The notes under the pieces: model-generated | Databases searched by the model: none | What the model was told of the DNA's origin: nothing | Seen by the model: only the letters and a program-made list of their open reading frames with translations | Part shown: one piece after another, positions 11,394 to 27,224 of the stretch | How positions within the stretch are numbered: the first letter of the stretch is position 1 | Layout of the letters: each line of letters starts with the position of its first letter | Origin: Caecitellus pseudoparvulus | Taxonomy: Eukaryota; Protista; Bigyra: Bicosoecida | DNA length: 64,000 bases | Assembly: GCA_965644315.1 (NCBI GenBank) | Contig: CBFFRQ010000030.1 | Coordinates: forward strand, 372,001 to 436,000 | Direction: 5' to 3' | Position numbers and translations under genes: made by a program

Positions 11394-11411
11394 CGCCGCG
11401 TGCACGCCCGT

Positions 11412-12329
11412 CTACTGCGTTACACGGTACTCCACGATGAGGTCCTGCCCCCGCCGCCACTGGGTTTTGAGGACGAACTCCAGGGTGTGTTCCTTGCCCA
11501 TGACGGGGGCGCCGTTGACGAGGAGCTGGATGGAGGAGGGCGGGACGGGGCAGGGGGTGGTGGTGAGGGCACCCCCCTGCCCCTCCACAGTCCTCACCAG
11601 GCGCTTGGCGATGAAGGTGCGCAGATCCTGCAGCTGCAGGGCGGCCAGAGTGCGCAGGAAGGGCCGTGGCAGCAGGGGCTGTGCGTCGTCTGCCCGGACC
11701 AGGTTGAGCACAATGTACTTGCACTGCTCGGCGGCGTCCGAGTTGATGGTCACGCGGCGGCGTGAGCGCATGAGGCTGTCCAGAGTCACTTCCACGGCCC
11801 CGCTGACTGTGGGCGAGGCGCTGGCTGTGGAGTCCTGTGCAGCCGGCGTCAGGGGCGTCGCAGACGGCGCCAGCTGAGGCTTGAGCTTGTTGATGAAGCC
11901 ACGCAAGGTCTGGTCCGGTCTGCAGCGCGGCGGGAGGGGACGCAGTGCGCATGAGGTGCAGCTGTGCACATCTGGTGCATGGTTGTGCTTGTGTTTACGC
12001 ACTTGATTTGCCCATTGGCCACGGGGTCGCCTTGCAGACTCATGTGGCAGGTTGGGCATTCAGTCCCGACGTCGATCAAATGCCGCATCAGGCACACCTT
12101 GCAAACTGCAGGGTGGGGGGCAGGGGGCGTGGGGAACGGGCTCCCACCACGATGACTAGCTACCAAGGCTCCCCCTGCCTGCTGCTCAGGGGCCTGGCCA
12201 CTCACAGGTGTGCAGGCATTCGCAAAAAGTGTGTGGGTCGCGAAGGTACCCGCTGCACAGCGCACAGGACAGCAGGGGGTTCAGCTCCGACAGGTCGGCA
12301 ACGCTGATAGATGTGCTGGACGCCGCCAT
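11412..12329 (-). CDS. Polycomb-group RING finger (PCGF/BMI1/DRIP-like) protein with RING and C-terminal RAWUL domain, 3 exons
   Basis: LSELNPLLSCALCSGYLRDPHTFCECLHT|xCKVCL...CPTC...IK|PDQTLRGFINKL matches the PCGF RING signature. The C-terminus FLRT...LRTFIAKRL...IQLLVNG..MGKEHTLEFVLKTQW..DLIVEYR is RAWUL-like. Confidence 0.88.
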
Positions 12330-12864
12330 GACTTGTGAAGTGCCTGCAGCACGCTCGCTCTGCAGAGCCTCCCACACGCCTGCACAGCTGCGCCTGTGAG
12401 CACGACTGCAGTGCGGAATTGGAGCCCAGCAGCTGACTTGCAGAGGCCGTCCGAACGGGCTGCAAGCCCGCTCACTTGCCTGGGGCGTGCTGCACCTAGC
12501 TCAGCTGGCACCGCTCAGCGTGCACTTTGTTTACGCGGCTGAGTTTTCCGTCGCAGCAAGTTTTGGAGCGTCGGCGCAGTTGGCGCTGCGTTCGCGGCGT
12601 GGGATCCCGGAAGCTGCCCGGCCAATCCAAAGTACAAGTCAAAAACAAACCCCTCAATCACAACTCACTCACCACTCTGAGCCGAGGGCTGCTCTCTGCA
12701 TTTGCTGCCTCACTCGGCTGCAAGCAGGGCACCACCAGCCAAGTTCCGCACCACCACCGCCACGCGGAGGTGTGCCAGCTGAGCTTGTACCTGCGCCACC
12801 CAGGAGCGGGTTACCGATCAAGAGGCCCTCTTTTGGTTCTCCTTGTTCTCGTGCCCTCATCGCC

Positions 12865-15800
12865 ATGGCGAGTTCTCAGTTCAAGTTCACGCTGCCGGCC
12901 CAGGCAATGCGCTTTGCTGACGGTGCGTGCCGCCGCAAACAGCCACCCGAACAGGCAGCGCAACGCACGCCCCAGCCCGCCCGCACGCCCGCAGACAACA
13001 TCACTGTCGGCAAGCACAGCACTGCGAAGGATGCGCTGCAGTGGTTCATGGGGCAGCGCCGCCTGAACAAGCAGTTCACGCCTGACCACGAGGCCCTCGC
13101 GTGCAAGTTTGTGGATTTGGCCGTGGACCTTCGCGACGCCTACGCCTCGAAGGACGGCCTGATCAACTTCAGGTACCTCACCCAGCAGGTACGTGCAAAG
13201 GGCTTACGCACAGACGCAGGCCGAGCGCCTCCCGGCGGCACGTGGCGGCCTGGCTGCCTGTTCCGCCCGGCGTCGTTTCGAGCTCTGGCGCTGTCTGCAC
13301 CGCCACGCCCTCTCCCCTCTCACAGCACAACCCTGCATCCCTGGACCGCGTCGTGCGCCGACTGATCGACCGGGCCCTGTCCACGGCACGCAGCAAGCGT
13401 GACGAGGCAGTGGGCCGTGTGGACCTGTCCAAGGTGGACGACCTGGATGCCGAGCAGACGCCCGAAGAGCTGCTCATGAGCAGCATGACCAGCGAAGGGG
13501 CAGCGGAGCGTGCCGAGCGGGAGCTCGTCGTGCCCTGGGTGCGCCACGCGTGGGACGTCTGCCGCAACACCCTGGACACACTGCGCAACATCCCCAAGCT
13601 GGAGGGCGCGTACCAGTTCGCGGCGTTCCAGGCCTTTGAGTTCTGCCAGGAGTTCGGGCGCACGACCGAATTCCGCAAGCTGTGCGAGAGCATGCGCAAG
13701 CACCTGAACCACTGGCGCAACGATTTCCAGAAGTGGGACCAGTCGGAGCCTGACGCCCGCTTCACGCTGGACAATCTGGAGAAGCACATGACCACGCGTT
13801 TCCGGCAGCTGCAGCATTGCGCGGAGCTGTCCATGTGGAGCGAGGGCTTCCGCACCGTGGACGACATTTACTCCCTCGTGCGCCTGGCGCCGGAGGAGCC
13901 CGATGCCAAGCTCATGGCCCAGTACTACGCCCAGGTGGCCAAGATTTTCTGGAAGTCAGACGACCTGCTCTTCCACGCCTACGCCACCCTGCAGCAGTTC
14001 AAGGTGGTGGCGGCCCAGCATGGCGTCGTGACGGCGGCGTCTGGCACTGGCGCGGGCACGGCTGCCGGCTCCGACGCGGCGCCCCCCGCCGTGACCGCCC
14101 TGGCGAACAAGCTCATCTGCGCTGCGCTGTGCGTGCCGCTGTTCGCGGACTCCGAGAGTGAGGACGAGCGCTTCTTCCACATCGACTTCGACAAGGACAA
14201 GAAGGACCGCCTGGCCAAGCTGCTGAACTTCGCAGACACGCCGTCCCGCCCCGAGTTGCTGGCGACGTTGGGGCACATGGGCGTGGCGCACCTGGCCAGC
14301 CCCGCCATCGGCGCTCTCCTGGCCACGCTGGAGTCGACGTTCCACCCCCTGGGCATCGTCAAGGCAGCCGAGCCAGCCCTCGTGGAAGTGAAGGCGGACG
14401 CCGAGCTGAGCGAGTATGCCCCCGCCCTGGAACGCCTGACCCTGTACCGCCTGCTGGCGCAGCTGACGCAGGTGTACTCCCACATCACCATGGAGTTCTT
14501 CGAGGAGCTCGTGGCGCCCCTGACCCTGTCGGGCGAGGAGCTGGAGCTGGAGGTGGCACGGGGGTGCAAGGCGGGCCTGCTGCAGGTGCGCCTGGACCAC
14601 TGCGGCCGCAGCATCCGCCTGGGGCAGGAGAGCATGGAGAGCGACCGCATGCGCTCCCAGCTCACCGCCCTGGCCACCGCCCTGGCTGACGTGCTGCCCA
14701 CGCTGCCCACTGAGAGCGGGGGCGTGAGCGACCTGCTCAGCGCCAAGCGCGAGCAGGTGTTCAAGCACGCCGCCGAGTCCGAGGACGGCGTCGTGACGGA
14801 GAACTTGGACCGCCTGGCGGAGATCGAGGCCCGGCGCAGGGAGCAGGCCCGCAAGGCAGAGATCAAGAAGCGACAGGTACGTGCCATCCCACCCGCCCTG
14901 CTGTGGCCCTGCCGGCAAGCTGCAGCTGTGCCCCAGCCCCACCATGCTGAGTGCACTTCCTTTCGTCTTGCCACATGAACTGCCGCCGTTTGAGGGAGGG
15001 GGGCTGCGCAGTGCCCCCCTCTCATAGAGTTCGCAAACACCCCCCTCACGAAGGACGTCCCTTCTCCCCCCCTCACAGGCTGACGCTGAAGCTGCTGCGC
15101 TGGCGAAGCGCCAGGCAGAGCACGAGGCGGCCCGCGTGGCTGCCGACGAGCTCCGCCGCAAGAACGAGAAGATCAAGAAGCTGGAGGAGGAGATGCACAT
15201 CGACGCCGTGTCAGCTGCGCTCGTGGAGGCGGGGCAGGACCCCAAGTCCAAGACGCACCAGGAACTCCTGGAGCTGACCGTGGAGCAGGTGGAGGCGGAG
15301 GCCCAGCGCAAGCTGGTCAAGTCCATGCAGGCGGCAGAGAAGCGCCGGGAGAAGCGCCGCCTGGAGCAAGGCTTCCTCGTCCGTGCCATGCGTGAGCGGG
15401 AGCAGGACGAGCTGGATGCGTGGGTGGCCGCGCACATGTCTGTGGACAGCGCCTACGCCGAGAAGCAGCAGGAGCTCATGCGCCTGCGTGCGGAGAAGCT
15501 GCACGAGCAGACACAGGTCGTCAAGCGCCGCCTGGCGCGCATGATGCCGTTCCTGGGCGACTTCGAGGACTCCATCTTCCAGCAGCGCAAGGAAGCCCAC
15601 GCGGCAGCATTGGTACGTGCCTGCCCCCGCCCCGCCCTGCGCCACGCCACCCATCATTGAGATCCCGCCCCTCCTGACCATGAGGAGGCGGGACATTGCA
15701 GATGGAACAGCAACTCAAAACTGCCAAAACGCGTGCGGGGGGCCCACAGTGGGCGGTGGCAGCCCTTGCCAGCCGCCCCCCCAGCCGGTCCCGACATCAC

Positions 15801-16332
15801 CTGCACTTCGCTGCACCCTTCACAGGTGGAGCGCCGACGCAAGGCGCGCGCAGACGCCATCCCGGGCAAGGTGGAGCGTGCCAGGAAGCTGAAGCAGGAG
15901 AAGGACCAGGAGGAGGCGCGCCTGCGGCAGGCTGAGCTGGATCGCCGCGCAGCCGAGGAACACAAGCGCGCCGAGGAGGACTGGCGACGTGCAGGGCCCT
16001 CCGCTGCCGTGTCCGCTCGCCCCCCACCGCGAGCCGAGAAGGATCTGGACTTCAGCAGCCTGCGCCGGGGGCCCAGCAGCACACCTGCCCCCGCTCCTGC
16101 GCCAAGGGATGACCTCGATTTCTCGGCTGTGCGCGGCGGCAGCGCGCCCAGGCCCTCGGATGCTGGCCCGCCCCCCCCTGTCAGCCACAACATCCGCGGT
16201 GGCAGGAGCAGCGAGAGCAGCTTCTCGCGCTGGAGCGGGTCGTCACAGTCTGGGGAGCGCCGCACCAGCAGTGGCGCCTTCGGCAGCGGGCCCAAGCCCA
16301 GCTCAGGCGGAGCTGGCGGCAAGTGGCGATGA
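12865..16332 (+). CDS. EIF3A: Eukaryotic translation initiation factor 3 subunit A, 5 exons
   Basis: Conserved eIF3a segments: ELLMSSM...ERELVVPWVRHAWDVCRNTLDTLRNIPKLE..Y...AFEFC...RTTEFRKLCESMRKHL; TRFRQL...LSMWSEGFRTVDDI; YYAQVAKIFWKSDDLLFHAYA. These are followed by a PCI region and a long charged helix. Confidence 0.95.
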
Positions 16333-16583
16333 GGAGTCCACTCTGGTGAGTGCGTGTGTCCCCCTCCCCGTGCCGAACTCGCCGGCCCTCGCATAGTACA
16401 CTCTGTGGCCCGGTGCACCCCCCACCGGGTTTCAATTTTTCACGATGCAAGATTCCTGCTGTGCCTGCAACAACGGCGGTGCTGCGCGCCCCCGCTGCAC
16501 CCCTGTACTCCACTGGTGAGCGCACATCCCCCCCCCCCTTCCTCTCAGGCACCACCGTCTGCGCCATCTGCTGCTGCCCTGTC

Positions 16584-16591
16584 AATGCATT
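16584..16591. promoter_or_regulatory. Palindromic AATGCATT, candidate 3'-end signal between eIF3a and Nup54
   Basis: Lies 12 nt beyond the Nup54 stop, in the convergent intergenic gap. Confidence 0.4.
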
Positions 16592-16602
16592 GCGAAGCTG
16601 TG

Positions 16603-18215
16603 CTAGTCCAGGCCAGACACGACAGAGTCCACCGCCGAGTGATTGGCGCGCCGCCCGCGCTTGCGCCGCAGCTCCCGCTTCATGATCTCCAAGTCGATCT
16701 GGTCCGCCTTGATGAGGTCCGCCAGCCCCCGGATGGTCACCTGCTGCCGCTCCAGGTGGGCTGTGATCTCCGGCAGGTGTCGCGCGAGGCGTGCCTCGTC
16801 CGAGGCAGACATGGCCCCTGCCCGCCCTGCACCTGTGTGCCCGGCCAGCTCCTGCTGCAGCAGAATCAGCTGCTGTGCCCGCGCCACGAGCCCCTTGCCG
16901 GGCTGGGCCAGCTGTGTGAGCAGGCCCTCCAGCTGCTGTGTTAGGCGAGCCTGGCCCGGGGCGCAGGAGGGGACGGTGGTGGGGGCCAGGGCGCAGTCCA
17001 CGAGCTGCATCACGCCCAGCAGGCGGCGGGACAGCTTCGCGTGCCGCCGCTTGAGCTCCTCCACCTTGCCAGCGTGGGACTTGAGCTTGGCCACGGTCTG
17101 TGTCGCAGCGTCCAGCACAGCCTGCGGCGAGGGGGGCAAGGGAGGGAATTGATTGGGTGAAGGCAGTGTAAGGTGCAATTGCAGCGCCCCCACGCACCGC
17201 TGCAGCTTCCACGAAGCTCTTGTTGGCCTTGTCCATGATTTTGGTGCGCTGCAGCAGGCCATGAAACCCCAGCACCACCGTGGGTTCCAGGGCGTCCTCG
17301 CGGCCGTGATCCAGAGGAAGCATGTCATGCTCGTCAGGACGAAGTAAAGCATGCTTGACATACCTCCTGTTGGGTCGGGCTCGGTCAAAGACGACCGCCT
17401 GCGCAGGAAACGGGCATCGCTGGTGTGCCACCGGCGTTACGCGGGTTCTGCCTCACTGCACGTACTCGAAGCTGCCCCTCGCGCGGGTCGTTGCTGTACG
17501 CTGCGCGCAGCTTGGTGAACGTAGCAAATTCAGGCTCGTTTGTAACTGTGCCCTGCAACAGCCCCCCGCCGGCTTGCTGCTGCAGGAAGCAGTCTGCTGG
17601 CTGCAGCTGCCACCCGCCGTACACCGGCATCATCTCCTCTGCCACCAACTGCCCGCTGCCTGCTGCCTGCTGCCCGCCAAGCAGCCCGCCACCGCGCTGT
17701 CCTCCCCCCAGCAACCCCCCTGTCGCTTGGCCGCCCCCCAGCAAGCCAGTGCCTCCCCCGCCAAGCAGCCCTCCGCTGCTCTGGCCGCCCAGCAGCCCGC
17801 CACTGGTTTGCCCGCCGCCCAGCAACCCTGTCCCACCGCCCAGCAGCCCGCCAGATGTCTGACCACCACCCAACAGACCAGTACCGCCCCCTCCGCCCAG
17901 CAGCCCGCCGCTGGTCTGCCCGCCGCCCAGCAGCCCAGTGCCGCCCCCACCACCCAGCAACCCACCTGTAGTCTGACCGCCACCCAGCAACCCGCCAGTG
18001 GTCTGGCCGCCACCCAGCAGCCCACCTGTGGTCTGGCCGCCACCCAGCAGGCCAGTTCCACCACCTCCGCCACCCAGCAGCCCGCCAGTGGTTTGCGCGC
18101 CGCCCAACAATCCGCCGCTGGCCTGGCCTCCGCCCAGCAAACCAGTGCCGCCACCTCCACCCAGCAGCCCGCCGCTGGCCTGGCCTCCGCCCAGTAAGCC
18201 TGTGCCTCCAAGCAT
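16603..18215 (-). CDS. NUP54: Nucleoporin Nup54/Nup57-like, with an N-terminal GLLG-repeat domain, 3 exons
   Basis: Gly-rich repeat N-terminus, then KLRAAYS...QLR|AVVFD and PTVVLGFHGLLQR (cf. the Nup54 PVxxxGFxxLxxR motif), coiled coil KRRHAKLSRRLLGVM, and the typical C-terminus ITAHLERQQVTIRGLADLIKADQIDLEIM. Confidence 0.85.
17670..18210 (-). repeat. Imperfect coding tandem repeat (~24-33 nt units) encoding 19 GLLG motifs
   Basis: CCCAGCAG/CCCAGCAA-type units on the + strand. Translation is (T/SG/TTG)GLLGGG(Q). Confidence 0.9.
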
Positions 18216-18530
18216 GATGCAGGCTAGTGAAATCTCAATCCCTACCGTGCGCCTGTACGGCGCGGCGAGTGCGTGGGATTGTGAATTGTGCCGAGCCGCG
18301 GAAATTGACGCAGGCCGTCTCGAAGACATTCAGACGACTGCGGCCAGCTCCTGGGGCACTGCCACCCTCGGCAAGCCTGAGCACTGCGCTGTGTTTTTAC
18401 ACTTGTCCAGCTGGCTGCAGCTCTGTTTAAACTCTGAGCCTGCACGAGCACGCCAGCCGTGCAAAGTGGAGAACCCAAATGGGAGCTGGCTCTCACCCTC
18501 ACCGCCACGCCCATCGCACACCCAGCACCC

Positions 18531-19478
18531 TCACGACTGGGGAGCAGACTGGGGAGCAGCACCTCCCGCCCGCAGCGCAGCCATCGTGCGCACTGTCATC
18601 TCCAGCATGTCTCCTGCAGCGTCCACCTCCGCCTCCCACAAAACGCTCTCCCGAGCCCGCAGCGCAACCTCTGCCGCCGCGGCTTCCTGCAGTGCCATGC
18701 GCTCGGAGCTGGGCAGGGCATCGAAGGCTTGCTGCAGTGCTGCCTCCGCCTCGGCCTGCGTGGAAGGGCGGCCCAGGGACTGGGCCTGTGCCGCCACCAC
18801 CGCCTTGCCGGCTGGGGACACTGCGAAGGACCGCAGGGCAGACTGGCCATGCTCGGGGCGGGGGCCCACCATGAGGCCCACAGTGCTGGTGCAGTCGGCT
18901 GGGATGCCCTGTGAGTGGCCCGCACGCCGTGAATGTGTGCAGGGCCAGCGAGGCGCCGGCAGGGGCAGGGAGGGACGCACACGTTTGAGGGCCTCGACGC
19001 CCTGGTTCACGTCAGAGTGGTACAGGGCATAGATGACGTTGGGCAGTGTGAGCAGCTCGGCGGTTTTGTCAGGAATGCGCAGGTCTGTGTGGCGACAGTG
19101 CGTGCGCTGTCTGGCGCTGCTGGCTGCTGCAACCCTGCGCAGTCACCCCGCACCTTCCTCCACGTGAGCGGGGTATTCACTTCTCGCATCCCCAGTCACT
19201 AGCGTCTCCCAAACCGCCTGCGCAGCGCTGCAGGGGGTGGACGGATGGGGTGAGCAGCTGCGGAAATTGCTCCCACCCTCCCCCACGCACCGCGGTGCCA
19301 GGTCGATGCCTTGCATTTTCAGGAGCACAGACACTTCAAAGAAGTCTATGGTTGGCTCCTTCAAGGGTGTCAGCACCAGCTGGTTGTCCATGTACGCTTG
19401 CACCGCCTTGGCCACAGCCAGCACCTGGACAGGCGTCACTTGCTGCTGCGCAGCCGAGGCGTCTGTTGACGACGCCAT
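18531..19478 (-). CDS. Hypothetical protein with a degenerate HMG-box-like C-terminal region, ~4 exons
   Basis: MASSTDASAAQQ... spliced to LRIPDKTAELL...ALKR and PRPEHGQSALRSFA...QAEAEAALQQAFDALPSSERMALQEAAAAE, whose spacing resembles HMG-box helices (SAxxxF...W/FxxLxxxE[KR]). Confidence 0.55.
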
Positions 19479-20610: not shown

Positions 20611-21051
20611 AGCACCCGCAACGGCTTTCTGCAAGCGCGACAAGCTCTTGTGCGAGAGCTGTGAGCACAGCTGGAAGCTATGAGAGGCCAGAATGAGGCT
20701 GTACAGGTAGCGTGCAGCTTTGCACGTTCCTGCGCGGTGGATTTGATTTCCTGGCGTGTTTGACTGCAGTGCACAGGAATGAAAGACAGCCAAGACTGTG
20801 CTGGTGCAATACCTCACGGCATTCTCGTCAGCTGAACAATTCACACAGCCTGCACTTCCACCCAGCAGAGCGTTAATGACGAGCGTGGCCTCGGCTGCCA
20901 ATGGTTCTCCGGGCTCAGTGCTGTGCCTGCTTTATCCCCCAGTTGTATTGCGTTTCGCAAGCGTTTCAAACAAGCACGCACGTTGCACAGCCGACGTCCA
21001 GGGCACGCGTGTGGGAAGAAAAGGTGCTGCAGCAGTCCAAACTCCCTTGCA

Positions 21052-21684
21052 ATGGGTGTGGGTGCCATGCGCCCTGGGCATGTACAGATCAGTTCCCTTC
21101 CACTGGCGCTGGAAGTTCATGCGCCTGCGACAGTGGGCTTTCTTTTCCTCTGCGTTGCGGTGCTGGTGGGGCACCAGCTGGGGGTTGCCGACGCTCACCT
21201 GAAGCTCGGCCTCCTTCCCATGCACATGATGCGACTGCCTGACCTTCCTCGCTTCGTGGCGTATCCGCTGGCCCATACGTCCTGGAGTCACTTGGCGTCC
21301 AACTTCGCAACGCTGCTGCTGCTGGCGCCAGGGCTCGAGGCACGGTACGGCAGCCTGCCCCTCGTCGGCATCTTCTGCGGCACTGCAGCTGCAAGTGGAA
21401 TGGTATACAGCATGTTCGCGTCGAATTCCATGCTTGTGGGGTCTAGCGGCATCGTCTTTGCGTGCATTCTGCTGTCGGGCGGTTCCCGCCTGCAGCGTGT
21501 GCGCGGCGTGTGGCGTGTCCCTGTGTCCTACGCCGCCCTCGTCGGTCTTTGGACTGCGCAGGAGCTGGCAGTCATGCTGTCTTCAGGAAGCTCCCGTGTC
21601 TCCCACTTCTGCCACTTCTTGGGCGGTCTGTGTGGGCTTGGGTTTGCAGTGGCCTGGAGTCCGTCCCCGCCCTTGTGTCGTTGA
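21052..21684 (+). CDS. Rhomboid-family intramembrane serine protease
   Basis: RFVAYPLAHTSWSHLASN, catalytic GSSG, and HFCHFLGGLCG with the catalytic His. About six hydrophobic segments. The start could be 21052 or 21067. Confidence 0.88.
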   Translation: MGVGAMRPGHVQISSLPLALEVHAPATVGFLFLCVAVLVGHQLGVADAHLKLGLLPMHMMRLPDLPRFVAYPLAHTSWSHLASNFATLLLLAPGLEARYGSLPLVGIFCGTAAASGMVYSMFASNSMLVGSSGIVFACILLSGGSRLQRVRGVWRVPVSYAALVGLWTAQELAVMLSSGSSRVSHFCHFLGGLCGLGFAVAWSPSPPLCR

Positions 21685-21774: not shown

Positions 21775-24700
21775 TCACAGGAAGAAGCCCCCCTCTGCGT
21801 CAGGGCCAGAGTGCACGTGCTGCCCAGCCCACTGCACCCACTCAGGGCTGCTCACCCCGATGGGCTTCAGCAGACCGCCGCCCGGCGTGTATGTGAGGCC
21901 CTGCACACCCTTGCGGCCCGGCGTGCGAGCGGGGGTGTTGGGGGCCGACAGCGCGCCCAGCGGCTTGCGCTGCTGCGGCGGGGCTGGCGGCGGCACGGCC
22001 TGCGCTTGCTGCGCCCAGGCCTTGGCCGCTCCCACGATGCGGTGCAGTGCAGCGGTGGCGGCGGGCACGGACATGCTGCTGGCGCTGGAGGGGCCGGCGC
22101 CGCCTGTCATGGCCGTCGCCCCGGACAAGGGCAGCTCCGCCAGTGGCGCACAGCCGTCGGCTGCCGCCTCTTGAATGGCTTGCAGGGCGGCAGGGAGGTC
22201 GGCGAGCTCTGTGCCGTGGGAGGTGCTGGTGCGGGAGGGGGAGGTGGCTGCAGCTGCAGCGGGTGAGGCAGGCACCGGGGAGCCTGGTGGAGCCCGCTCA
22301 GGCAGCCCCAGTGCCTGCACGGCACTCTGCACTGCCGCTGTGAGGGTGGTCACGTCGCCTTGCAGGCGCGCCACAGCCTGTTCCCGCTGACGGAGCTCAG
22401 TGGGCGGCGTCGACGGCGTCGGCACCGGGCGCCCTTCCGTCAGGGCAGCGATGGTGGCCTTGGCCTCGGCCAGCTTGGTCTTCAGCCGCACGGTGGCAGC
22501 AACTCTGCCACGGGCAGTGAGGGCCAGCTTGGCATCCTGCAGTTGTTCGGCCAGCACCAGGATGGCGGCAGACAGCTCGCCCACTGCGCTGCGAGCGGTG
22601 GACAGCTCAGCGGCGACGGCGGCGACGGCGGCGTGGGCGCCAGTGGCGGTCTGCTGGGAGCCTGCACCCGCTGTCGTGGCCGCGGCAGCTTCCGCCCGTG
22701 CCTCTCGCAGGGCACTTCGCAAGTCAGCCACCTCCCGCTCAGCAGCGGCTGCCTGGACCGTGGCGGCATCTCGCTCCCCTCGCAGGACACGCAAGGACGC
22801 CTGGGCCGCGCAGAGGGCCTGCCGGGTCTTCTCGCCCTCCACTTCCAGCTTGGCCACTCGCCCCGTGGCAGTGGCGTTCACGCTGGCCGTCGCCTGCGAC
22901 GTGGCCTGAGCTCGCGCCAGGGCCGCCTCAGCCTCACCAGCCCGCGCCAGGGCTGCCTCCAGCTTGGCGTTGCGCTGTGCCACCATGGCTTCCAGGCGCT
23001 CCACGAGGGAGGAGTGCTTGGCTTCGGAGCTGCTGGCCTCGGCGGCCCGGGTCGCCGTTTCTTCCAGCTGCGCCGTCAGCTCCTCCACTCGGGACGACGC
23101 GACACGCAGGTCCGCGCTGAGGGTCTCCACCTGCGCCTCCAGCGCAGCTTGCGTCGTGCTGGCCACGGCAGCCGCCTCGGCCGCCGCGTCCCGGGCTTCC
23201 TTCAAGTCCACTGTCAGCGTCCCAGTGGCGCTCTGTGCGTCCGCCAGCTGGCTCTGCGCCTGCACGAGGCTGGCACGGAGGCTGGCTGCGTCGCTGCGGG
23301 AGGCCAGCAGCGCGTCATCGCGCTGCTGCAAGAGGGCCAGCACCTCCCCCGCAGGGGTGTCGGCACCTGCTGTGCCGGCGGCATCACTCTCGGCAGCCGC
23401 CTCATCCACCGGCGTGCCAGGCGCCTCACCCTGCAGCGTCGCGCGGAGCTCGGCCAGCGCCTGCGCTTGTGGCTCCAACTCCGCGATGCGGCGCTGGGCT
23501 GCCTCCAGCTGCCCCTTCACCTCCTCCACCCGTGTCTTCGCCTCGGCCTGTGCCGCCTGGGCACGGCCAGTGGCAGCCGCCGCAGCCGCCTCCGCCTCCC
23601 GCTGGCCTGCCTCCGCCAGGGCTGCCCGCCCAGCGCCCTCCTCTGCCGCTGCTGCCGCCGCATCGGCCAATGCATCAGCTGCTGCAGCAGCCCCCTCTGC
23701 TGCATCTGCGCGTTCCTTTGCCGCAGCAGCATCCGCCGCGGCAGTGCTGGCGGCAGCGTCTGCCTCTGCCGCTCGCTTCTCAGCTGCTGCAGCCGCCACT
23801 TTGGCGCTCTCCAGGGCCTCCATGACCTCGCCCAGCTCCGCCTCGGACGCAGTGCGTGCCGCAGCAGCCTCTGCGCGCACCCGCTCTAGGTCAGTCCTTG
23901 CCGCGGCAGCCTCGGCATGGGCTGCACTCACAGTCCGCTCAGCGGCCTCGGCTCGGCCGCTGGCAGCCTTCAGGGCGCCTCGGGCTTCGATCAGGTTGGT
24001 GGTCAGCTCTGCAGCAGCCATCTCGGCCTCCTGCAGCTGTCGGTGCAGGTCAGCTGCCACCTGCTGCTCAGCAGCCAGCTCGCGACGCAGGGCGCTCGCT
24101 ACAGCTGCCTCCGCCTCAGCTGCCCCCTTGGACGCCGCCAGGTCTGCTTGCGCCTCCCGCAGCTCCTGCTGCACCCGCAGCGTGGCGGCGTGCGCCTCGT
24201 CTGCGCTGCTACTGGCTGTGGAGTCGGCCTCTGCCGCCGCACGCTTCGCCGCAGCAGCTTCTGCCTCTGCCGCCACGGCACGCTGGTCCGCTGCGGCGGC
24301 CTCAGCCTCTGCCTCGGACAGCTGGCGGCGCAGGTCGGCGCAGGTCGCCTGGAACTTGCGAGACGCCTCCATATTCGTCTCGGCGTCCTCCACGGCGCTC
24401 TCCAGCTGGAACGTTGCCCGCTGGGCCTTGTGCAGGGCTGCCTTGCGCCCCTTCTCCGCCTTGTCCAGCGCCGCGTGGGCGTCGGCCAGCAGGGCGGCTG
24501 AGCTCTTGGCCTCGCTCTCCGCCTCCTCCAAGGCGCCCTGCAGAGTGGACACCTCGTCCCGAGCCAGGTCCAGATCCCCCCGCACCGCCGCCAGGGCTGC
24601 CTCCGCCTCGGCACGCTCAGCATCGGCCCGCTCGGCAAGGCACGCCGCCTCCTCACCAGCGGCGTGTGCCTCGGACAGCTGCACCTGCAGAGCGGCCAGC

Positions 24701-27224
24701 TGACGAGACAGGTCTGCGATGCGTCCCTCGGAGACAAGCAGGGTCTCCTGGGCACTGCCCGCCTCCGCCTCCGCTGCAGCGGCGGTGTCCGCCTTCGCCT
24801 GGTGGGCCAGCCCCAGCTCCCGCCGCAGGCGAGCAATGGTCAAGTCCCCTGCATCCAGGCGCACGCTCGCTTCTGCCGCGGCGGCCTCCGCCTTTTCTGC
24901 GCGGGCTGTGGCTGCCTTGGCCTCGGCGGCCGCGGCCTCCGCCTGGGCGGTGGCGGCGGCCAGGCGCCCTGCGAAGTCCTGCTCCTCTCGCCACTGCTGC
25001 ATCTTGGCGCTGCGGGCTGCCTCTGCCTCTGCGCGGGCAGCCTCAGGGTTCTCCCACCCCACTTCATGCCGGGCGAGGGCAGCGCTGAGGGCAGCCCGCT
25101 CGCGCCGGAGGGCATCCAACTCGGCCAGTGCAGCGTCCATGCTGCCGGCCAGGGCGGCCTGAGGGGAGGCGCCCTCGTGGCGGGCTGCCCACAGGCGTGC
25201 CACGGCGGTGGGCGTGTACGTGAGGGTGGACGGCAGGGGCAGGGCTGACGTGCTCCGCACCACTGTGTCCTCCTCCTCGCCCTCCTCAGCTGTCGGCTCG
25301 GCCAGGGCGAGGGGGGCGTCCACCTCCGCCAAGTCGTCGATGAGCATGCGCAGGCGCACCGCCTCGGGGTTGCAGCACACCAGCTTCTGCAGGGCAGAGA
25401 TCTCCTCGGCAGCCTCTGGCGGGGTGAGGACCAGGTCCCCCCCCTGCCCCTGCGCCCGGGCCAGAGCAGCCTCACGCAGCTTCAGCCGCAGGTTTTGCGC
25501 CGCACGCACCTCCTCCAGGCGGTGCACCAGCTCGGAGTACTGCTCCAGTGCGGACGTCAGCTCCTGCACACGGGATTCAGAGGCGGCCGCCGCAGCAGAG
25601 GCCGCTGCCGCTGTTGCCCGTGCAGCAGCCAGCTCTGCCGCCGCACTGGCGGCCGCGGAGAGGGAGCCAAGCGGGGGCAGCCCCGTGTCTGTCGCATCGG
25701 CATGGGCCTTGGCCAGCAGCTCCAGAGCCAGGCCTGCTGGCAGCGACGTGTGGTCAGGGGAGGCACCCGCGTCCCCCGCCCCTGCCCGGCTGGCAGCACG
25801 GTGTGAAGCTGCCAGGGCTTGGAAGAGGGCTTCCATCTTGGCGAGGGAGGGCGCCACCGCCGCCACGGCCAGAGCAGCGGGGGTGCAGGCGCCCTGTGCG
25901 TGGGCTGTGCCGTCTGCTGCGGCTCCACCGGACGTGATGGCTGTGCGTGCCTCGGCCAGGGCGGCTTGGAGGCGGCGCACCTCCGCCTGCAGCAGGGCGA
26001 AGGAGCCGGCCGTGTCCTCATTCACGACGGCCTGGTTCTTCACGAGCTTGGCACGGGAGGCGAACTTGAGGGTGGAGAGGGTCTCCCCGAAGGCCTCCTC
26101 TGCAGGGGACACCGTGGCCACCAGGAACGTCTTGGAGTTGCCGCCCAGGCTGTCCCGCAGGAGAAACGTGAGCTTCGAATTGCGGTAGGGCACGTGCGCG
26201 ACGCTGCGCCCGCTGGACACCGCCGCCAGGGCCTGGATGACGTTGCCCAGCTCGGACAGGGACTTGTTGATGTTGGAGGCCTCCCGGAGGCGGGCGCCCT
26301 CGGCCCCCGTGCCCTTCTGGCGCTCTGAGCCAGCCAGGTCGATGAGGTTGAAGCGCGCGTGGCGCGTCTTGGTCAGACCACTGGCCTCTGTCTCGCGACA
26401 CTCAATGCGCAGGGTGAACACGGAGTGGGAGCGGGAGGAATGGCGGTTCATGGCGGTGGCGCCAATGTGGCGGTTGCGGGCGCCCCGCTTCATCAACGCC
26501 AGGGCGTCCTCAGGGCACGCCACCTCCTCCTCAGTCAGCCCGTCCACATACACACCCTTATCAGAGTCCTCCCGCAGAGCTGTGCAGGGGGGGCGGCGCG
26601 TCGTTCACGTGTGCCGCACGATGCCGTGTCAGCCACGTTGCCCGTCTTCCTGCGCACCTAGGTTGGTGCTGGCTGCGTCCAGCAGGTCGATGATGCGCTC
26701 ATTGTAAATCTCCAAGAAGGAGCACTTGGTCGTATACGACACCTTGGATCCCTTCTCAGCCTGGGAGAGGGAGGAACAGGCGCAGGGCGAGGTGCAGAAG
26801 TGAGCAGCGCGTCCGTTACCAGCTTCATTTTCCGCACCTGACCCGTTCGCTGGGAAGTCGTCGCGAAGAGGTGCCGCAGCACGCGAGGCAGGAGGCCAGC
26901 CTCGTCTCCATTCCCCTCTCCTAGAATTGTGTGTGTTTTCCCGCTGCCAGTCTGCCCGTACGCAAAGACAGTGCCGTGGAAGCCTGCCGCACATGCCTCT
27001 GTCAAGGGTCGTCCCACAGCCTCGAACAAGTCACTCTGAGCCGTGTCCGGGCCAAACACGCGGTCATAGGTGAAGTCCTTCACAGAAGCGCCCTTCAGTG
27101 CCACTGTGCGCGCGTCATCTTGCACTTCCAGCACGCTGGCGCTGCCTGCCTCGCGCTTGCTGAGCGGGCGCAGGCGACACACCACCTGGATGGTCTCCGC
27201 ACCTCCGCCGTCACTGGCAGACAT
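21775..27224 (-). CDS. Kinesin-12 (KIF15-like) N-terminal motor with very long Ala/Glu coiled-coil tail, 3 exons
   Basis: P-loop YGQTGSGKT, SFLEIYNE, NRHSSRSH, LIDLAGSER, HVPYRNSKLTFLLRDSLGGNSKT, and the neck ETLSTLKFASRAKLVKNQAVVNED typical of kinesin-12. Confidence 0.92.

Follow-up and report, generated by a model that had tools for sequence, protein, structure and literature searches.

Must the barrier of the nuclear pore be built with phenylalanine? FG motifs are treated as universal in this role; they hold the barrier together and they bind transport receptors, and the two roles are hard to separate. The locus described here lies in a 64,000-nucleotide stretch of DNA (hereafter the window, meaning the whole stretch that was analysed) and raises this question directly. 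The orthologue of Nup54 encoded there is the only one in its genome, that of a marine stramenopile flagellate; the assignment is established below together with the structure and transcription of the gene. The N-terminal repeats of this nucleoporin are GLLG.

Gene structure and transcription

The gene is composed of the following features, in window coordinates.

17670-18215, reverse strand: Nup54 repeats, 182 aa with 19 GLLG and without Phe; spacers of Gly/Thr/Gln/Ser
17466-17669, reverse strand: rest of exon 1; linker with the clade-conserved MxPxYGGWxL motif and first helix of the folded part
17399-17465, reverse strand: intron 1 (67 nt, GT-AG); joint seen in RNA contigs X5 and X16, same position in relatives
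17198-17398, reverse strand: exon 2 (67 aa), presumed to hold the alpha/beta region and the first part of the coiled coil
17122-17197, reverse strand: intron 2 (76 nt, GT-AG); joint seen in RNA contigs X7 and X16, spliced in model P0003
16603-17121, reverse strand: exon 3 (172 aa, then TAG), with the Nup54 domain followed by coiled coils at the C-terminus

Together the three exons (250, 67 and 172 codons) specify a protein of 489 residues. Exon 1 (18215-17466) begins with the repeats and continues in frame into the folded part. A preliminary description of the locus had the repeats joined to the body by splicing, which held only in part: the repeats and the beginning of the folded domain lie together in exon 1, and splicing adds only what follows. 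RNA contigs cover the repeats (17925-18226 and 18066-18269, with 0-1 letters different from the DNA) as well as both introns; record 2 of X16 spans 17637 to 16580 across both joints, and X5 and X7 contain one joint each. None of the RNA contigs bridges 17638-17889, between repeats and body, so the evidence that the two are linked is the uninterrupted reading frame. Two other samples have the same frame intact, with 19 GLLG motifs, and strain differences in exon 1 amount to 16 synonymous and 3 non-synonymous codons, none of them in a motif.

Two alternative gene models were considered and rejected. An in-frame GC-AG intron after the repeats is incompatible with record 2 of X16, a spliced contig in which 17637-17465 is retained, and the same stretch is conserved as protein in relatives, which argues that it is coding. 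Could an upstream exon supply FG motifs instead? The neighbouring reading frame ends at 18531, and a contig from the RNA library is unspliced up to 18269, against such an exon. The 38 in-frame codons upstream of the Nup54 ATG contain no Phe.

Two ordinary neighbours are a Rhomboid-family gene (window 20926-21684, forward strand; Pfam E 4.5e-16) and a gene at window 21775-26553 (reverse strand) that by eye encodes a kinesin whose coiled-coil tail is long. The neighbourhood of Nup54, eIF3a and a RAWUL-domain gene (window 11400-17100) is kept in L065, a relative at 41% identity. Separately, the NCBI proteins P0003, P0015 and P0016 belong to the same organism and are filed under Symbiodinium sp. 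KB8, which suggests a contaminated assembly.

Assignment to Nup54

Searches for Nup54 were run exon by exon, not with the joined 489-residue protein. Exon 3 alone matches Pfam PF13874 (E 1.8e-6) with 28.5 bits, just below the 30.5 cut-off, and the match covers model positions 69-136 only, the domain being split by an intron; the Nup54 domain has a single match in the genome, and PF13874 is matched by four of the five clade members. When a five-sequence profile of exon 3 is compared with the PDB, Xenopus Nup54 is the top match (E 3.9e-7), followed by human Nup54 (6.9e-7), and Chaetomium Nup57 is also found (E 0.008). The structure model of exon 3 is all-helical (pLDDT 61), and a Foldseek search with it returned generic helical bundles only. 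The claim of a Nup54-type body was thus upheld by PF13874 and the PDB profile matches, both resting on exon 3. For the alpha/beta part that was also claimed, exon 2 shows conservation within the clade, at 48-75% identity in three relatives; by itself it matches nothing in Pfam or the PDB, and this part is a presumption. The overall layout is that of known Nup54 and Nup57 proteins, i.e. a single-copy gene with N-terminal low-complexity uncharged repeats, a Nup54 domain and C-terminal coiled coils. What sets the protein apart from the Nup54/Nup57 of the Nup62-Nup58-Nup54 trimer is its motif, which is GLLG; FG dipeptides are absent from all exons, and judged strictly by its sequence this Nup54 does not count as an FG-repeat protein.

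A repeat domain without phenylalanine

The 182 residues of the repeat domain include 98 Gly, 39 Leu, 19 Thr, 13 Gln and 7 Ser, with no Trp or Tyr. The preliminary description had counted 19 GLLG motifs and no Phe in an N-terminus of about 185 residues, and both counts held; its uncharged G/Q/T/S spacers held nearly, a lone Arg being the single charged residue (0.5%). The motif is not a by-product of composition: in 20,000 shuffles that preserve composition, GLLG occurs 2.4 times on average and never more than 9 times, as against the 19 observed, and elsewhere in the window only 4 occur in all six frames. With one motif per about 9-10 residues (median spacing 10), the domain meets the criterion of low-complexity uncharged spacers between regular hydrophobic motifs (PMC4283134). 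We consider it likely that the domain works like an FG domain, its cohesion and receptor binding being inferred.

Conservation in relatives

How old is this trait? A large protein search with the last exon of Nup54 reached four relatives, all members of the clade, at 63, 43, 41 and 36% identity; it reached no named stramenopile Nup54, leaving Cafeteria, oomycetes and diatoms uncounted. In the most distant of the four (L066, exon 3 at 36% identity) the N-terminus is complete: its repeats comprise 14 GLLG and one SLLG and are free of Phe, and the linker motif and both introns are shared with the flagellate's gene. In the relative at 43% identity (L063, from a Tara sample) three GLLG are visible up to the point where the contig breaks off, and the contigs of the other two stop short of the repeats. 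GLLG is therefore conserved in the Nup54 of distant relatives, as is shown for the two whose repeats are covered, and its presence in proteins only 36-43% identical implies that the trait is clade-wide and older than the deep splits of the clade. Word searches found no useful relatives (one fungal match for Nup62, only its own cluster for Nup54), and metagenome scans and Atlas look-ups gave no yield.

Other nucleoporins

The other loci that bear on the barrier repeats are listed here.

L004:1399-7404, reverse strand: Nup98-96 (2002-aa frame), repeats plus autoprotease and Nup96 domains
L029:3588-5460 = G000:C65:146087-147959, forward strand: probable Nup58, LLG repeats at both ends
L032:3988-8313 = G000:C68:826487-830812, reverse strand: lamin-tail-domain protein (1442-aa frame), C-terminal SLLG/SLFG array
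L033:1410-5123 = G000:C40:183409-187122, forward strand: ankyrin-repeat protein, 14 GLLG near the C-terminus
L034:338-7621, forward strand: ECM29 proteasome adaptor, short patch with three GLFG at residues about 1916-1981
G000:C43:662576-662970, reverse strand: GLMG array, about 17 motifs

Nup98-96 (contig C20), identified by its autoprotease and Nup96 domains, carries 30 GLMG and 18 GLLG motifs and not one FG in its repeat region, of which 2.5% is charged. Nup62 (contig C13), identified by Nsp1_C, has 15 SLLG and 6 GLLG, with one SLFG at its start. The protein on contig C65 has 21 LLG motifs split between the two ends of a helical middle part; it has no Pfam or PDB match, and we regard it as the likely Nup58 on the strength of its layout and a weak trimer model only. 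In that model, the helical parts of Nup54, Nup62 and the C65 protein score 0.57 as three chains (best control, 0.00), with at least 74% of contacts shared between runs and partner pLDDT of at least 63. Of 78 solved complexes, 51 attained the score mark used, as did 2 of 108 mismatches, and scores of 0.60 or below are wrong more often than right unless the guess was likely beforehand. A Nup62-Nup58-Nup54 trimer is thus a possibility with weak support, predicted by a model that may be remembering the solved complex. As an aside, Nup98-96 retains a GLEBS-like segment and an HFS cleavage site, and residues about 860-930, between the repeats and the autoprotease, look ubiquitin-like by eye, where Pfam reports no domain.

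Where, then, are FG motifs still found? The Pfam FG-repeat model PF13634 matches four loci in the genome: an ArfGAP with DPF repeats, ECM29, the ankyrin-repeat protein, and the lamin-tail-domain protein, in which 10 SLLG alternate with 9 SLFG. The last is possibly a basket-like nucleoporin, and it is the main remaining source of FG that was found. The ankyrin-repeat protein, whose GLLG repeats are set in acidic His/Val/Asp spacers, could conceivably be pore-associated. In ECM29, which is not a nucleoporin, the patch consists of true FG motifs. Closely spaced LFG pairs, sought with a DNA pattern, gave 22 scattered matches genome-wide, as against 43 for the control, and a second pattern admitting GLFG, GLLG or GLMG pairs found arrays only at Nup98, Nup54 and the C43 GLMG array; matches on contig C32 contain no LLG or LMG arrays. 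In other words, neither PF13634 nor the two DNA patterns found a canonical FG array in the genome. Both patterns are limited to short spacings, so this genome-wide search gives a lower bound on FG content.

Phe has been lost from the repeats of Nup54, Nup62 (one SLFG left), Nup98 and the probable Nup58. The preliminary description had inferred that part of the pore barrier may be built from Leu-based repeats; this is supported and was understated. The count of FG against LG motifs that it proposed for Nup62, Nup58, Nup98 and the Nup54 of relatives comes out in favour of Leu and Met, with one SLFG, in Nup62. The altered phase behaviour or karyopherin binding that it drew from this is still inference.

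Genetic code and selection on the motif

The nuclear genetic code is standard. When importin-beta is aligned to that of Tribonema, CTG codons fall on Leu (23), with Phe not among the common matches, and TTC falls on Phe. At the Phe site of the Nup54 motifs, 17 of 19 codons are CTG or TTG, and C-to-U editing is excluded for this gene because neither can become a Phe codon by such a change. Phe makes up 2.4-4.8% of folded proteins of the same genome and is retained in the DPF repeats of the ArfGAP, and the Phe site is occupied by five different Leu codons in the L066 relative and by ATG in Nup98. This variety of codons, with Phe normal elsewhere, points to selection on the amino acid. The genome is 30.6 Mb, and GC is about 65% in the window. 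The 18S gene is 1697 nt long. A mitochondrial contig (G000:C213, L068-L071; 41,713 bp, 21% GC) uses code 4; on it nad11 appears as two separate frames, and tRNA-Ala and tRNA-Gly are present in the mitochondrial genome. From these data we infer a stramenopile flagellate, probably close to the bicosoecids. Halocafeteria (46.8% GC) does not fit, nor does Cafileria, in whose mitochondrion the two tRNAs are missing, and Cafeteria burkhardae has a higher GC of roughly 70%.

Spacing, hydrophobicity and cohesion

The same Phe-to-Leu exchange has been made by design. Engineered 12-mers changed from GLFG to GLLG do not phase-separate (PMC9918544, PMC8938434); one extra Leu restores a phase that excludes mCherry, and it also excludes importin-beta, transportin and Xpo1 and cuts the entry of NTF2 50-fold (PMC9918544, PMC8938434). 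A Phe-free Leu phase can therefore act as a barrier (PMC8938434), provided that hydrophobicity is kept, as the pair GLLG52x12 and GLLG//L52x12 illustrates (PMC8938434, PMC9918544). The compensation would differ: an extra spacer Leu in the artificial GLLG//L52x12, shorter spacers in the flagellate. The native repeat domains have one motif per 8-10 residues, where 666 Nup98 FG domains average one per 12.5 +/- 0.7 (PMC4283134), and FILVM residues make up 22-25% of the Nup54 and Nup98 repeats, where the surveyed Nup98 FG domains have 13-17% (PMC4283134). Hydrophobic side-chain carbons per residue number 0.81-0.98 in the Nup54, Nup58-like and Nup98 repeats and a lower 0.55 in those of Nup62; among the engineered references, GLLG52x12, which is non-cohesive, has 0.67, and GLFG 14- to 12-mers, which phase-separate, have 0.79-0.92 (PMC9918544). 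This count is a crude proxy devised here that ignores spacers, which are about half Gly. As the saturation concentration falls 3-5 fold per spacer residue removed (PMC9918544), tighter spacing may restore cohesion, a possibility inferred from the carbon proxy in the absence of cohesion data.

The GLFG domains of Nup98, Nup100 and Nup116 (PMC4283134) share with the flagellate repeats the GLxG form, the G/T/S/Q/A spacers and the avoidance of charge, and motif number is similar (48 in Nup98 here, median 43 +/- 6 in the surveyed domains; PMC4283134); the differences are that x is Leu or Met here and that Gly reaches about 50%. The closest natural parallel, a departure from FG across several nucleoporins of one lineage, is the NIFN repeat of micronuclear Nup98 and Nup214 in Tetrahymena (PMC5450191), which keeps Phe, changes Gly and is confined to one type of nucleus, whereas the flagellate has lost Phe from the central-channel set. 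No natural Phe-free nucleoporin repeats were found in the open-access literature that we searched, most subscription journals lying outside the search.

Transport receptors

The engineered Leu phases exclude natural receptors, whereas a living flagellate must pass its own; from the exclusion of importin-beta by engineered GLLG phases it follows that the lineage probably has adapted receptors. Is there any trace of such adaptation? Human importin-beta contacts the motif in two ways: F217 and Y255 stack on its Phe, and E214 forms a bond with its Gly (PMC2172684). By alignment only, the flagellate protein (gene at L051, G000:C94:92500-99000) has Gln, Ile and His in place of E214, F217 and Y255, and P0009, a relative at 42% identity for which there is no evidence of LG repeats, has Gln, Ile and Ser. 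The yeast, Chaetomium and Tribonema proteins retain Glu at 214 and Tyr at 255; position 217 is Met in Tribonema, so F217 is lost there too. The changes may be incidental, since the whole protein is strongly diverged: the closest named importin-beta, that of Tribonema, is about 22% identical, and the best PDB match of importin-beta scores 85 bits, as compared with 192 for transportin and 716 for exportin-1. The loss of both FG-stacking aromatics is thus merely suggestive of receptor adaptation, a possibility that is weak and without binding data. NTF2 (PF02136) has no match in the genome, where short exons may hide it, and the RanBP1 domain has one (C43:63639-63809), a low count that may also reflect short exons.

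A proposed explanation and its rivals

Our favoured explanation, which we hold to be likely with its functional part inferred from DNA and RNA sequence only, is that this lineage exchanged Phe for Leu or Met in the repeats of most barrier nucleoporins, giving a native sieve with adapted receptors. In this view, Nup54 would be anchored by its coiled coil in the inner ring, as part of the trimer with Nup62 and Nup58, and its GLLG domain would fill the channel. The GLLG domain of Nup54 and the GLMG/GLLG domain of Nup98 would form a cohesive sieve through aliphatic rather than aromatic contacts, with shorter spacers (about 9 residues per motif in place of 12.5) offsetting the smaller side chain. 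Transport receptors would cross by way of surfaces adapted to Leu and Met, not Phe-stacking pockets, and the few SLFG motifs of the basket-like protein may be left as docking sites. A bolder reading, towards which we lean by a small margin, is that a whole clade of free-living flagellates has an essentially aromatic-free Leu/Met phase in the central channel, with retuned receptors, i.e. a second chemistry of the pore barrier.

The rival that survives best accepts the Leu/Met phase as real and holds that receptors need no adaptation, ordinary hydrophobic and arginine contacts being sufficient and the importin-beta changes reflecting general divergence. This is possible but not likely. Cation-pi contacts are not needed for Arg-rich and engineered probes to enter the GLLG//L phase (PMC9918544), exportin-1 is conserved overall (its pockets were not compared), and Tribonema too lacks F217; against it, the E214 and Y255 equivalents are changed here and in P0009 and kept in the proteins of yeast, Chaetomium and Tribonema.

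Could the pore of this small cell instead be leakier, with Leu/Met repeats as weakly cohesive or non-cohesive fillers and selectivity arising from SLFG motifs, FG proteins not yet found or receptor crowding? In favour are the non-cohesive engineered GLLG52x12 (PMC9918544, PMC8938434), the low hydrophobic-carbon value of the Nup62 repeats, and the nine SLFG of the lamin-tail-domain protein together with the incomplete searches for FG arrays. We judge this unlikely, however: Nup98, the main barrier former (PMC4283134), has 48 motifs with tighter spacing and little charge, the motifs are kept in relatives at 36% identity, and nine SLFG on one protein compare poorly with more than 5000 FG per vertebrate pore (PMC4283134).

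Neutral drift, in which GC-biased mutation turned Phe codons into Leu codons that repeat homogenisation then spread, is very unlikely as an explanation. The genome is about 65% GC, TTC to CTC is a single transition and the repeats are clearly homogenised; yet Phe is at normal levels in folded proteins and kept in the DPF repeats, the Phe site is mostly CTG, TTG or ATG and not CTC, and at least four unlinked genes have changed, one of them largely to Met. Drift as sole cause is largely refuted, and the first mutations may still stem from it.

Finally, a hidden Phe, through a changed code, C-to-U editing or a faulty gene model, would gain from the uncovered 17638-17889 and from the tendency of contigs to drop rare variants, but is all but excluded by the codon assignments against Tribonema, the 17 of 19 inconvertible codons, the agreement of the repeat contigs with the DNA and the frame intact in other samples and relatives.

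Outlook

What is new here is the gene structure of this Nup54, the conservation of its repeats in distant relatives and a candidate compensation through spacer shortening. Surveys that count FG overlook such nucleoporins. If our favoured reading is true, a natural Leu/Met pore would offer repeats and receptors that match each other and have evolved in the absence of Phe. Combining them with GLFG phases and standard receptors would separate the contribution of Phe pockets from that of hydrophobic partitioning, and would tell whether a native condensate can do without aromatic stickers.
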